From Ophelia neglecta (Eukaryota), in assembly GCA_965285935.1 (NCBI GenBank), contig OZ260661.1:120032001-120096000 (forward strand): a stretch of 64,000 nt of DNA, in the 5' to 3' direction. Position numbers and translations under genes: made by a program. Below the pieces are notes generated by a model, which worked only from the letters and a program-made list of their open reading frames with translations, made no database searches and was not told where the DNA came from. This document shows positions 32,801 through 35,800 of the stretch, one piece after another. How positions within the stretch are numbered: position 1 is the first letter of the stretch; every line of letters begins with the position of its first letter.

Positions 32801-35800
32801 GCCTTCCTGAAATTGTATTAATTAATATATAATTACAACTTTGCAGAAATTGAATTTAATATATAAACATAGATTGCTCTCCTCCTAAAAAATTGTCTGC
32901 TCCTGAATTGCATGATTTCAAAAAATGATCCATATTTCAGTTCTAAGGGAATGATTTGCCATAAACCATATAATTTTGTTTTACCAGCAACTGCTAAAAA
33001 AGCAAAATAAAAAATGAGCTGCTTTCTCAGCACATTTTCAAATGTGAAATTTCATGTGCAGGACAAGTGAATACTATTAGAATGAGGGCTATTCCTTTGA
33101 GAAGGGGGGGGGATAGGAGCTGAGTGGGCAAAAGATTTAAATAAGGTTGCTAGGGTGGAGAGGATTAGTTCCGAATTTAGGGGAAGATTCATGTTATTTG
33201 GCAGCAGGGGAGGAAGGGGGGGGGTTCCATCATTTAAATTAGGTGGGTATAGAAATTGAGCAGAACTGTGGCGCAAAGAACCTTGAAAAAAATTGAACCC
33301 TCTAATTCTTAAACTTTTTAATGGAATAGCCCTGATTTCGTATCTTAATGGCTTTTACAATTAAAAAATTAACAACATAGGCTGATTACCTTTTAGTTGT
33401 GCTATTTGGATGTAGCTCTTTCGAATTACAGGCGTCAATCTAAATATGAATAAATTCAGCCATTGTATTTTAATGTTGAAATCTGTCAAATTTTAAGCTA
33501 ACGTTTAATCATTCTGTTTGTTAGTTTTGCTGTTGGTTTTCTTCTCAGGTGGCTGAGAGAGCATTATACTATTGGAATAATGAGTACATCCTGAGCCTAA
33601 TTAGTGATAATGTTAGCGAAATACTCCCGATAATGTTCCCTGCACTATACAGAACCAAACAACATTGGAACAAGTAGGTATCCGAATGCTGCCCGGTCGA
33701 CTCCCAGATGTTGTTGCTTCTCTCCCTGGATTGCCTAATGGACTGGTCCATCCAAAGTTCTGGATCAATCCATTGGTCACCCACGGGGATGCCTGAACTA
33801 GATGTCATCACAACTATCCCTTGTGTGATTTCATTTTTTCTGTGCCTGTTGTATGCTTGAAAATATGATTGGCCTATAAATTTCTACTGTACATCAATCT
33901 TGCCTCATTTAATTTTGAATCTCTTCAATTTTCTTTCAAATTCGATCATGATAAAAACCTTTTTGTTGTTTAACACTCTGCCCATGCATAATGATTGGTG
34001 TGCAGTGGATATTGGTGGCCTGTCTTTTTCTTAGGTGCTGTAGGTTTGCGGCTGCCTGGGAACACACACAAGAAGCCACCCTACGGCTTAGTATGGCCTC
34101 TAACACGTGGTCAAGCATCTACAACCACCGTCCCATACATTGCACCCTTTGCCTGTAGTTCTAGTTGACTTATCTTATTTTTCTTTGCTGCGTGTTTAGG
34201 TCGCTGAACGAGCCTTATATTTCTGGAATAACGAATATATAGTTAGTTTGATCAGTGACAATGCAAGCACGATTGTTCCTGTCATGTTTCCGGCCCTCTA
34301 CAAGAGCAAAGAGCACTGGAACAAGTAAGCTGCATCCTCCGAGATCACATAGTGTACGATGGGCTCTAGGTTTGCATGGCATCTGCATGGTAGTAGTCAA
34401 CCAGGGTAGCGGCCATTTCTCTCAGATCACATCTTGCGCCTATTATGAATGTTTTTTCTTTCAAGGTGGTAGTATTAAGTTCTAAGGAATTAATTTGTTA
34501 TTGTTCTATCAAGGACATTTGGCAAGAATTCTAAAATAAGCTTGATGTAGCAATTTTAATTCAATTATTTACTCTGCTACCATTACAATCAAAATGGTGT
34601 TTTTCCTTTTGAATTTTACTTTAAATTTGCTACCATATCACCCAAATCTGAACTTGCATTATACAAAATGCCAATAAAGCACCCTAAAGTTTGTAACCTT
34701 TGGCCTCGTTTTTTGCTTTAATGAGTTTGTTCCCTGCACTTCATAATTGGTTTGTAGAGTTTTGAATGCGGTAATGGCACTACAGTGAGAAGGTAAAGAG
34801 CTGTTATTGTAGCATGTCCCATGTGCCAGAACCAGAGCTCATCTCTCGCTCCGTGATCTCTATGTATGGATAGTCTCTCAAGTTACTGTGTATGCACCAC
34901 ACCTGTATGAACAGAGTGTTCATGTACTTCGCACTACCACCGCCACTACTCCTAATGTGTGACATATTAGCCGCAGCCTATCAATTCATTCATTCTGGCT
35001 TTCTCTCCCCCCGTTCTCCACCAATCATCTGCCTGCTCCCCACCTGTTGCCGTGATCCTTGTGTGTGTCAAAGGTCGCCGAGCGTGGGCTGATCTATTTC
35101 CACAACCACTGTTTCATGCAGTTGCTAAGCGACCACCTAGTCACCATAATGCCCCTCCTGTTTCCGGCCTTGTACAGCCAATCCCAGGCCCATTGGAACA
35201 AGTAAGATAGAAACTCACTTCGGTACTGTCGCTACCAGTACTCACCTTTCTTTTGGGAACTGTGGCCTCTGCGCTTTCTCTTGGTGCAGGTTCTACACTT
35301 AACCTGGAAAAAATACAATTTCAACTGGCTGCCGGCGAAAGCTGCATATATTTATGTTTAACATTTCTCATCAGGGGATTAATTTGACTATTGTATTGAG
35401 TAGGTGGTGGCTGAGTAACATATGTGCTTTTGTCTTTCTCTTATCCATTCAGCCCTTCCTATCTAAAAGAAAACTACTGTAAAACCACAAATTATTTACG
35501 GTCATTTAATTGGTGGATTTCATAAAAGGCAAACATGGCTAGTCGCCAGTGTTTGTTATTTGCAGTGTATTACATTTTACTGGGCTCTAACTGGACTCTA
35601 TTCAGTAAACTTTTATCTAAGCGAAAGGGTCCAATGGAGGAAACACCAACCAAAGTAGTAACAAACATTTGTTGTTTTACAGTACCTTAAACCAAAAAGA
35701 AACAGTCTCATACTTATTAGATAATTAATTAATTTTATTTAGTCATTATCTCTAATTTTAACACTTCTGACTAACAACGTAGACTCAAGACTATATAGTT

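Follow-up and report, generated by a model that had tools for sequence, protein, structure and literature searches.

A predicted either/or exon cluster in a PP2A B56 gene of Ophelia neglecta, with an ancient a/b pair and a later third copy

B56 subunits direct PP2A to its sites of action in mitosis, meiosis, and signalling, and how near-identical B56 paralogues gain different partners is an active question. In the window analysed here, a stretch of 64,000 nucleotides of Ophelia neglecta DNA, one B56 gene carries three tandem copies of a single exon, exon 11. The locus raises the question of whether these copies are alternatives of which exactly one is used, and how old each of them is. The original prediction read them as a triplicated, mutually exclusive cluster by which this lineage makes B56 variants through splicing rather than gene duplication. 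We consider it likely that the locus is an either/or tandem exon cluster composed of an ancient a/b pair and a later copy, 11c, and suggest that the exchange may retune the partners of PP2A-B56. The features of the gene are listed in Table 1.

Table 1. Coding features of the B56 gene in the window.
Feature	Position	Strand	Length	Splice sites	Remarks
B56 gene	4187..43350	+			gamma/delta-type PP2A B56 (PPP2R5-like); tblastn with the Paralvinella orthologue against the window and exon-by-exon Pfam B56 matches
Coding exons, first set	about 4187-4354, 17563-17787, 18173-18289, 28889-29023, 29607-29777	+
Coding exons, second set	about 30368-30424, 31791-31958, 32393-32563, exon-11 cluster	+
Coding exons, third set	about 36841-36943, 37597-37671, 43207-43350	+
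Exon 10	32393..32563	+	171 nt	donor CAG/gtactc	phase-0 end; ...SSPHFQ
Exon 11a	33549..33673	+	125 nt	acceptor ...ttcttctcag/G, donor AA/gtaggt	42 codons including the split Lys; a-type; C-end ...RTKQHWNK
Exon 11b	34200..34324	+	125 nt	acceptor ...gtgtttag/G, donor AA/gtaagc	b-type; C-end ...KSKEHWNK
Exon 11c	35074..35201	+	128 nt	acceptor ...gtgtcaaag/G, donor AA/gtaaga	43 codons; divergent; C-end ...SQSQAHWNK
Exon 12	36841..36943	+	103 nt	donor AAG/gtaagg	TIHGLIYN... after the Lys-completing base

Matches to the Pfam B56 family (PF01603), found exon by exon across the gene, establish its family membership. An additional N-terminal piece of the gene may lie near 2987-3058. The subfamily is evident from the 15-residue gamma/delta-type signature found after exon 11 and from the 13 gamma/delta-type residues encoded by exon 12; the alpha/beta/epsilon-type signature in the comparison set is HWN[QP]-TIVALVYNVLK. 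At the protein level, exon 10 is 98% identical to that of Paralvinella, and exon 12 is 100% identical to those of Paralvinella, Tegillarca, and Biomphalaria. Direct reading of the DNA between them confirmed the three predicted exon-11 paralogues, each bordered by AG and GT and each with a stop-free translation. 11a, 11b, and 11c match PF01603 positions 318-360 with 54.7, 56.4, and 37.7 bits, respectively (cut-off, the family gathering score of 25 bits). Each copy begins in phase 0, and its last two bases belong to a Lys codon, the third base of which is position 36841. At the protein level, 11b is 76% and 11c is 48% identical to 11a, and the nucleotide differences among the copies amount to 31-46%. 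The residue preceding HWN is Q in 11a, E in 11b, and A in 11c. The copies are thus adjacent homologous exons of equal phase with their own splice sites, as in mutually exclusive clusters.

The reading frame allows only one of the copies at a time, as originally predicted. The three lengths are each 2 mod 3, so that any pair adds up to 1 mod 3, whereas all three together, or none, add up to 0; according to the frame listing, the downstream frame is kept by single inclusion only. A stop is reached at 34240 when 11b is read after 11a, at 35090 when 11c is read after 11a or 11b, and at 36904 when exon 12 is read with all three copies skipped. Such combinations would cause a frameshift and an early stop, and their products would be removed or non-functional. 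Splicing of either 11a or 11b between exons 10 and 12 would yield two B56 proteins that differ in 42 residues only.

The use of the a and b types can be followed in other lophotrochozoans. In the loci of Paralvinella palmiformis (annelid), Tegillarca granosa (bivalve), and Biomphalaria (gastropod), too, exon 10 is followed by a, then b, then exon 12. The mollusc RefSeq entries named 'PP2A 56 kDa regulatory subunit gamma/delta isoform-like' (Biomphalaria glabrata, Magallana gigas, Aplysia californica, and Crassostrea virginica) represent the orthologous gene; these isoform models are automatic predictions, and they share both exon types (a, ...T[KQ]QHWNK; b, ...KSKEHWNK) with the window, a again preceding b. 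The B. glabrata isoforms XP_055879961.1 (a) and XP_013069181.1 (b) differ at 9 residues and the M. gigas isoforms XP_034326307.1 (a) and XP_034326305.1 (b) at 7, all of them in the exon-11 segment; in Aplysia, the a and b isoforms are of equal length. Assemblies of sequencing runs contain intron-free contigs of 2-3 kb, whose encoded proteins, 500-600 residues long, carry the a or the b type. Mature transcripts with exactly one of a and b are hence represented in orthologues, both by RefSeq isoform pairs and by intron-free transcript contigs. In a bryozoan, flatworms, and Dimorphilus, the a-type alone was found. A retrocopy of the a-type was also observed.

Since the a/b pair occurs in annelid, bivalve, and gastropod loci, comparison of these sequences dates it to before the mollusc-annelid split. 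Mutually exclusive use of a and b is well supported through the orthologues and is, by extension, expected in O. neglecta. The original prediction therefore stands for the a/b exchange and not for its restriction to this lineage, because the pair did not originate in the O. neglecta lineage. Similarly, the triplication is proven as DNA anatomy for all three copies, whereas mutual exclusion is what we infer for a and b alone. The proposal of splicing instead of gene duplication fits the gene count: Pfam B56 matches revealed only two B56 genes in this genome, and the second, at C1:79.09-79.11 Mb, has a single exon at the exon-11 position.

Unlike the two-copy mollusc genes, the window adds a divergent third copy of 43 codons downstream of b. 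Four orthologous loci that include the intron space, those of an annelid, a bivalve, and a gastropod among them, contain no counterpart of 11c; judged from these sequences, 11c is a later extra copy, specific to this lineage among the genomes sampled. Dating through related genomes, as the original prediction had suggested, thus gave an age for a/b, and 11c was seen here only among the loci sampled. A phmmer search of 1.84 billion representatives, with the 43 residues of 11c as query, found no 11c-like protein, the best matches (at most 56% identity) being ordinary B56. Hits in multiple stretches came from duplicated plant genes or from unrelated repeats. At the nucleotide level, 11c is 58% identical to b and 54% to a. 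In a maximum-likelihood tree of 28 exon peptides, which is largely unresolved, the 11c branch has a length of 3.8 changes per site and is without a reliable sister.

Two readings of 11c have to be weighed. It is possible, if somewhat short of probable, that 11c functions as a third alternative peculiar to this lineage, a neofunctionalised spliced targeting subunit added to an a/b switch with an age of more than 500 million years. Equally tentative is the reading of a two-way a/b switch in which 11c is an unused relic, once maybe coding, now skipped and slowly decaying. The absence of 11c from Paralvinella, Tegillarca, and Biomphalaria, the failure to find an 11c-like protein, and the 48% identity to 11a agree with a relic, as do radical changes at near-invariant family residues (W9F, N10H, E12H, and Y13C in the YYWNNEY helix) and a weak acceptor (AAG, not CAG or TAG). 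The open frame is weak evidence for 11c by itself, because about 20% of neutrally decayed copies remained stop-free in simulation.

The same simulation argues against simple decay. At 58% nucleotide identity, and presuming a b-like ancestor and uniform rates, 12-14 identical residues are expected under neutral decay and 22 were observed; the BLOSUM score is 128, against 35-48 expected. At most 2 of 4000 neutral runs reached the observed similarity (P<0.001). GC at codon positions 1/2/3 has a coding-type periodicity in 11c (0.53/0.30/0.79) as in exon 10 (0.54/0.23/0.74). Both splice sites are intact, and the only indel found on comparison with a and b comprises one whole codon, so that the length remains 2 mod 3. 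The haplotypes of the sequenced sample contain no variant in 11c and 7 within 255 nt on either side, which speaks against a relic and is not significant alone. Because 11c evolved fast yet under apparent constraint at the protein level, it has probably, in a judgement of modest confidence, served as a third alternative. Were 11c indeed functional, its variant would have 8 of the 13 positions rebuilt in the helix matching human B56alpha 374-386, as well as Ala before HWN, and the switch in lophotrochozoans would do the job of paralogous genes in vertebrates.

11a and 11b share 33 of 42 residues, and 20 of these are encoded by different codons, in agreement with the many synonymous differences originally noted. 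Since synonymous sites were saturated (a proportion of at least 0.77 in every comparison; the related contigs and proteins retrieved had less than 90% protein identity), classical dN/dS between the copies, as had been proposed, was set aside, and constraint was assessed by codon counts and neutral simulation instead. 11a shares 41 of 42 residues with Paralvinella 11a, 23 of them with different codons, and 11b likewise shares 41 of 42 with Paralvinella 11b, 25 with different codons. These sequence comparisons indicate that a and b are each under purifying selection. A further reading is that this species uses one exon constitutively and leaves the others silent though conserved, with alternative splicing in molluscs only. 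This is very improbable, since a and b are each a single residue away from Paralvinella at saturated synonymous divergence, and an unused exon would not be expected to be so conserved.

An assembly or collapse/expansion artefact, a general possibility with nothing beyond that in its favour, has a negligible probability in view of the nucleotide divergence among the copies, the synteny of two copies in three other phylum-level lineages, and the recovery of the same arrangement in contigs independently assembled from three DNA runs, by which the assembly duplication envisaged in the original prediction is ruled out. These contigs derive from one sample, whose three DNA-like runs were the sole ones recovered in a search for sequencing runs, and they cover the stretch with its introns and without joints; single contigs span exon 10, 11a, and 11b, and 11c is spanned separately. 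In the 762-Mb genome, 11c is single-copy.

How the choice might be enforced was approached by inverted-repeat scans, duplex scans, and cross-species intron comparison, and a regulatory element was not found by these. Neither the inverted repeats nor the duplexes pointed to a docking/selector partner that was both common and specific, and intronic conservation with Paralvinella or Tegillarca was not found. The strongest long-range duplex (about -54 kcal/mol) pairs a G-run in intron 10 with C-rich sequence upstream of 11c and is not specific, similar G-runs recurring across the window. Steric hindrance and U2/U12 incompatibility were rejected: the introns 11a-11b and 11b-11c measure 526 and 749 nt, all sites are GT-AG, and the junction is without a U12-type donor. 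In arthropods, the clusters of Dscam exon 6 and 14-3-3zeta use docking-site/selector RNA structures (mechanism reviewed in PMC6071210). The B56 cluster resembles them in having more than two tandem alternative exons of which one is to be chosen; unlike in those clusters, a shared docking element was not found in the present scans.

Tandem-duplicated exon substitution, or mutually exclusive exons, has been surveyed for human genes (PMC8373072; PMC9741552), and the coq-2 exons are a mutually exclusive case in helminths, molluscs, and annelids (PMC7434440). The present locus is similar to such events in its homologous adjacent exons of near-equal length and equal phase, with exactly one predicted to be included, and in its ancient pair with both copies under strong purifying selection. 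It differs in the gene family, B56 not being named in the titles and abstracts of these three papers. Across the full-text literature searched, mutually exclusive exons were not found described for B56/PPP2R5, widerborst, or well-rounded; a Xenopus paper on 'mixed-isoform' B56 concerns alternative first exons only. The a/b exon pair is hence undescribed in the searchable papers, as had been supposed, yet RefSeq already has models of the a and b isoforms. The pair is an old, well-conserved addition to the short list of exon substitutions outside vertebrates and arthropods.

The swapped segment corresponds to residues 367-408 of human B56alpha and 342-384 of B56gamma1. In the human paralogues, helix alpha 374-386 and alpha E405, the first residue of the EPVA/TKHG loop, are specificity determinants that bias binding toward Sgo2 and the centromere or toward LxxIxE motifs and the kinetochore (PMC6398977). 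The variable segment of the O. neglecta gene covers both this helix and the position of alpha E405, and the proposal that the residue before HWN specifies the isoform agrees with that work. The b form has E before HWN, as do alpha/beta/epsilon-type B56 proteins, whereas canonical gamma/delta-type proteins have S, T, or N. By analogy with the human paralogue chimaeras, the switch may retune the partner choice of PP2A-B56, and the LxxIxE pocket and the A/C-binding core would be untouched.

Animals with only two B56 genes would thereby have retained, since before the mollusc-annelid split, an either/or exon that swaps a helix and a loop residue implicated in the division of labour between human alpha/epsilon and gamma/delta. 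This amounts to a natural minimal chimaera experiment with two or three proteins 42 residues apart; therefore, the specificity question can be tested in oyster, Biomphalaria, Aplysia, and annelids. Unlike in vertebrates, which have five B56 genes, diversity would arise from one gene by splicing, as read here from sequence. A further difference from the vertebrate loops (EPVA in alpha/epsilon, TKHG in gamma/delta; PMC6398977) is that the toggle affects just one of the four signature positions, the first, since the other three (K, H, and G), supplied by the last residue of exon 11 and by exon 12, are constant.

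The gamma/delta-type PP2A B56 gene in the window contains three tandem versions of exon 11 (11a, 11b, and 11c) between exons 10 and 12. The coordinates, lengths, and phases given in the original prediction, as well as its Q, E, or A residue before HWN, agreed with direct reading of the sequence. Every copy has AG upstream and GTA(A/G)G downstream, remains open when read in the exon-10 frame, and has the first two bases of a Lys codon at its end. Searched singly, the peptides of 11a, 11b, and 11c matched Pfam PF01603 (profile positions 318-360) with 54.7, 56.4, and 37.7 bits, respectively, all above the gathering score. 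The cluster is real: an artefactual triplication is ruled out by the 31-46% nucleotide differences among the copies and by contigs independently assembled from three DNA runs of one sample, which covered 32300-37000, introns included, without a joint. Exon 10, 11a, and 11b were spanned together by single contigs; 11c was spanned separately and occurs once in the 762-Mb genome. No N is present in the window. The sole exonic haplotype variant in the cluster is a synonymous A>T at 33599, in the third position of a Leu codon of 11a, and intronic variant density among the sample haplotypes in the same stretch is approximately 1.2-1.4%.

Coordinates of the B56 gene, its exon-11 cluster, neighbouring exons, and orthologous loci
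Sequence	Feature	Position	Strand	Remarks
Window	gamma/delta-type PP2A B56 gene	~4.2-43.4 kb	+	at least 13 coding exons; tblastn with Paralvinella orthologue, Pfam B56 matches per exon
Window	exon 10	32393-32563	+	phase 0 at end, ...SSPHFQ
Window	exon 11a	33549-33673	+	125 nt
Window	exon 11b	34200-34324	+	125 nt
Window	exon 11c	35074-35201	+	128 nt
Window	exon 12	36841-36943	+	first base is last of Lys codon, then TIHGLIYN...
Window	downstream neighbour exon	50400-50846	-	Pfam MTP18 (mitochondrial fission process protein), 39.6 bits
Window	downstream neighbour exon	52117-52470	+	InaF-motif (TRP-interacting helix), 63.8 bits
Paralvinella palmiformis (L007), annelid	11a; 11b	18199-18324; 21530-21655		
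Tegillarca granosa (L008), bivalve	11a; 11b	24895-25020; 26323-26448		
Biomphalaria (L011), gastropod	11a; 11b	28298-28423; 29312-29437		
Watersipora (L009), bryozoan	a-type only			
Dimorphilus (L010), miniaturised annelid	a-type only			
Hymenolepis (L004), tapeworm	a-type only			

Since the exon lengths are all 2 mod 3 (a pair totals 1 mod 3; zero or three copies total 0), exon 12 is read in frame only with a single exon-11 copy. The earlier claim that exactly one must be used is borne out by this arithmetic and by the stops met in the shifted frames, at 34240 (11b after 11a), 35090 (11c after 11a or 11b), and 36904 (exon 12 directly after exon 10). Further exon junctions follow these stops; hence, by the general rule, products with several copies or none should be removed by nonsense-mediated decay.

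Homologs were sought with the exon-10 peptide (word-indexed search), 11c (full phmmer), and an a-type exon (region-restricted search), and many proteins and exon-sized fragments were returned. They contain two 42-residue types, a, ending in ...T[KQ]QHWNK, and b, ending in ...KSKEHWNK. Arthropods, chordates, and Nematostella have a single canonical 43-residue type, ...NSK[STN]HWNK. In all three loci with both copies (Paralvinella, Tegillarca, and Biomphalaria), exon 10 is followed by a, b, and exon 12 in turn; judged from this gene structure, the pair dates back at least to the last ancestor shared by molluscs and annelids. The proposal that variants are made by "this lineage" is therefore too narrow for a and b; it may apply to 11c, the only copy without a counterpart in those loci. 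The tree of the 42-residue segments was mostly without resolution; the window and Paralvinella, which have in common an IVSL...TIVP variant of the b exon, were grouped with 95/93 support. Exon 10 is 98% identical to that of Paralvinella, and over the whole B56 protein, annelid and mollusc orthologues are about equally close (82-85%, tblastn); an annelid is the likely source. Two exon-11-equivalent segments in P0387 (Cooperia oncophora) and in P0121 and P0176 (plants) reflect tandem or repeated whole B56 genes fused in the annotation, not exon duplications.

Either/or use of a and b is modelled in orthologues. In Biomphalaria glabrata, the RefSeq isoforms XP_055879961.1 (a) and XP_013069181.1 (b) of one gene both have 589 residues, and their nine differences all fall inside the exon. 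XP_034326307.1 (a) and XP_034326305.1 (b) of one Magallana gigas gene (551 residues each) show seven differences, confined to the exon segment. Equal-length a and b isoforms are also found in Aplysia and one further mollusc. Public sequencing-run assemblies contain intron-free contigs of 2-3 kb that encode proteins of 500-600 residues of either type; given gene lengths above 20 kb, these must be spliced mRNAs. An intron-less a-type copy of B56 mRNA (5762-6967, 401 codons, open) on L003, a 21.6-kb ENA contig, is a processed retrocopy in a lophotrochozoan, with reverse-transcriptase and transposase remnants as neighbours. The tandem arrangement is also evident from a Tegillarca gene model in which a and b are erroneously joined. 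The sequencing runs retrieved for Ophelia neglecta were DNA-like only, and exon use there was deduced from orthologues. Thus, mutually exclusive splicing, as originally proposed, is supported for a and b by the isoforms of Biomphalaria, Magallana, and Aplysia and, by analogy, probably operates in the window species.

Within the window, 11a and 11b have 33 of 42 residues in common, 20 of them with different codons. Between the window and Paralvinella, one of 42 residues differs in either exon, and different codons are used at 23 of the 41 conserved positions in 11a and 25 of 41 in 11b. Synonymous sites were saturated in all comparisons made. The case for purifying selection, first argued from synonymous differences between 11a and 11b, is made much stronger by these cross-species data.

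The third copy is divergent, with 48% identity to 11a, approximately 52% to 11b (22 of 42 aligned residues), and one extra codon. In Paralvinella, Tegillarca, and Biomphalaria, tblastn detected no counterpart (E<0.05) in the interval from 11b to exon 12, and phmmer found no 11c-like protein above 56% identity among 1.84 billion representatives; among the loci sampled, 11c is lineage-specific. It alters nearly family-invariant residues (W9F, N10H, E12H, and Y13C), and its acceptor is AAG. Its open frame alone proves little, because approximately 20% of neutrally simulated copies remain stop-free. However, several observations speak against plain decay. When a b-like exon was evolved neutrally to the observed 58% nucleotide identity, with only synonymous changes in the b lineage, the expectation was 12-14 residue identities with a BLOSUM62 score of 35-48; no more than 2 of 4000 runs attained the observed 22 and 128. 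GC by codon position (0.53/0.30/0.79) has the periodicity of exon 10 (0.54/0.23/0.74), unlike the flanking intron (0.41-0.49). Its single indel comprises one full codon, and neither splice site is damaged. Sample haplotypes carry no variant in 11c versus seven within 255 nt on either side, a difference not significant alone. From these sequence features, we conclude that 11c has probably been coding and constrained over a large part of its history; by a slight balance of probability, it is still used today.

As for how one exon is chosen, steric hindrance and U2/U12 incompatibility are excluded by the introns of 526 and 749 nt between the copies and by the GT-AG sites throughout. A scan for docking and selector sequences (inverted repeats and duplexes) gave one strong pairing of about -54 kcal/mol, in which intron-10 G-runs (~33095-33225) are matched with a C-rich tract upstream of 11c. 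This pairing is unspecific, as eleven other 40-nt windows in the 64 kb pair with the C-tract at -40 kcal/mol or better. The introns showed no sequence conservation with either Paralvinella or Tegillarca. This leaves frame surveillance together with presumed splicing regulators. A short intron-10 element with two G9 runs lies at 33081-33337 between 24-nt inverted repeats (33081-33104 and 33314-33337), and similar G-runs recur in the window, e.g., near 14100, 17880, 26490, and 51060; these, too, can pair unspecifically with the C-rich tract.

Exon 11 aligns to residues 342-384 of human B56gamma1, 418-460 of B56delta, and 367-408 of B56alpha. In human cells, the B56alpha 374-386 helix and the E405-P409-V412-A413 loop (EPVA; TKHG in gamma), which adjoins the catalytic subunit, choose between Sgo2 at the centromere and LxxIxE proteins at the kinetochore (PMC6398977). 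The exon codes for the helix (exon positions 8-20) and for E405, the signature position to which the predicted variable residue before HWN maps. The other three loop signature positions are constant here, with K ending each copy and H and G in exon 12. At position 405, b has E, like all alpha/beta/epsilon-type sequences compared, whereas S, T, or N occupies it in canonical gamma/delta-type proteins; a has Q, and c has A. Consistent differences between a and b lie at position 8 (Y/F) and positions 22-24, and 8 of the 13 helix positions distinguish c from a. By analogy with the human paralogue chimaeras, exon choice would most likely retune which partners the holoenzyme prefers, with no change to the LxxIxE pocket or scaffold contacts. 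Vertebrates obtain B56 diversity from five genes. Only two B56 genes are present in this genome; hence, splicing would supply that diversity, which fits the idea that it takes the place of B56 gene duplication.

Mutually exclusive exons arising from tandem duplication are a well-known kind of event. A full-text literature search found no paper on such an event in B56/PPP2R5 or the fly homologues, in line with the view that it had not been described for B56; nevertheless, the a and b isoforms are already in RefSeq as automatic models. The Xenopus "mixed-isoform" B56 study concerns alternative first exons, unlike the exon-11 choice here.

A long open frame at 40438-40839 (+), which follows exon 13 and precedes the last exon, probably represents another alternative part of this gene. 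It is similar to the variable acidic C-terminal inserts (11 protein letters not shown) of mollusc and Paralvinella proteins, which set longer "gamma-like" RefSeq isoforms apart from shorter "delta-like" ones. A 261-codon open frame within a B56 intron (24320-25102, +) had no Pfam match at E<=0.01; by eye, it is like the C-terminal region of an ORF from a non-LTR retrotransposon. The intron between 11c and exon 12 holds a high-copy repeat (35911-36695), over which contig word depth rises from approximately 25 to 600-6000. Its core (36015-36562) looks MITE-like, with CCGGACC/GGTCCGG-type inverted repeats and 21-nt terminal inverted repeats (36015-36035 and 36542-36562) that are 90% complementary.
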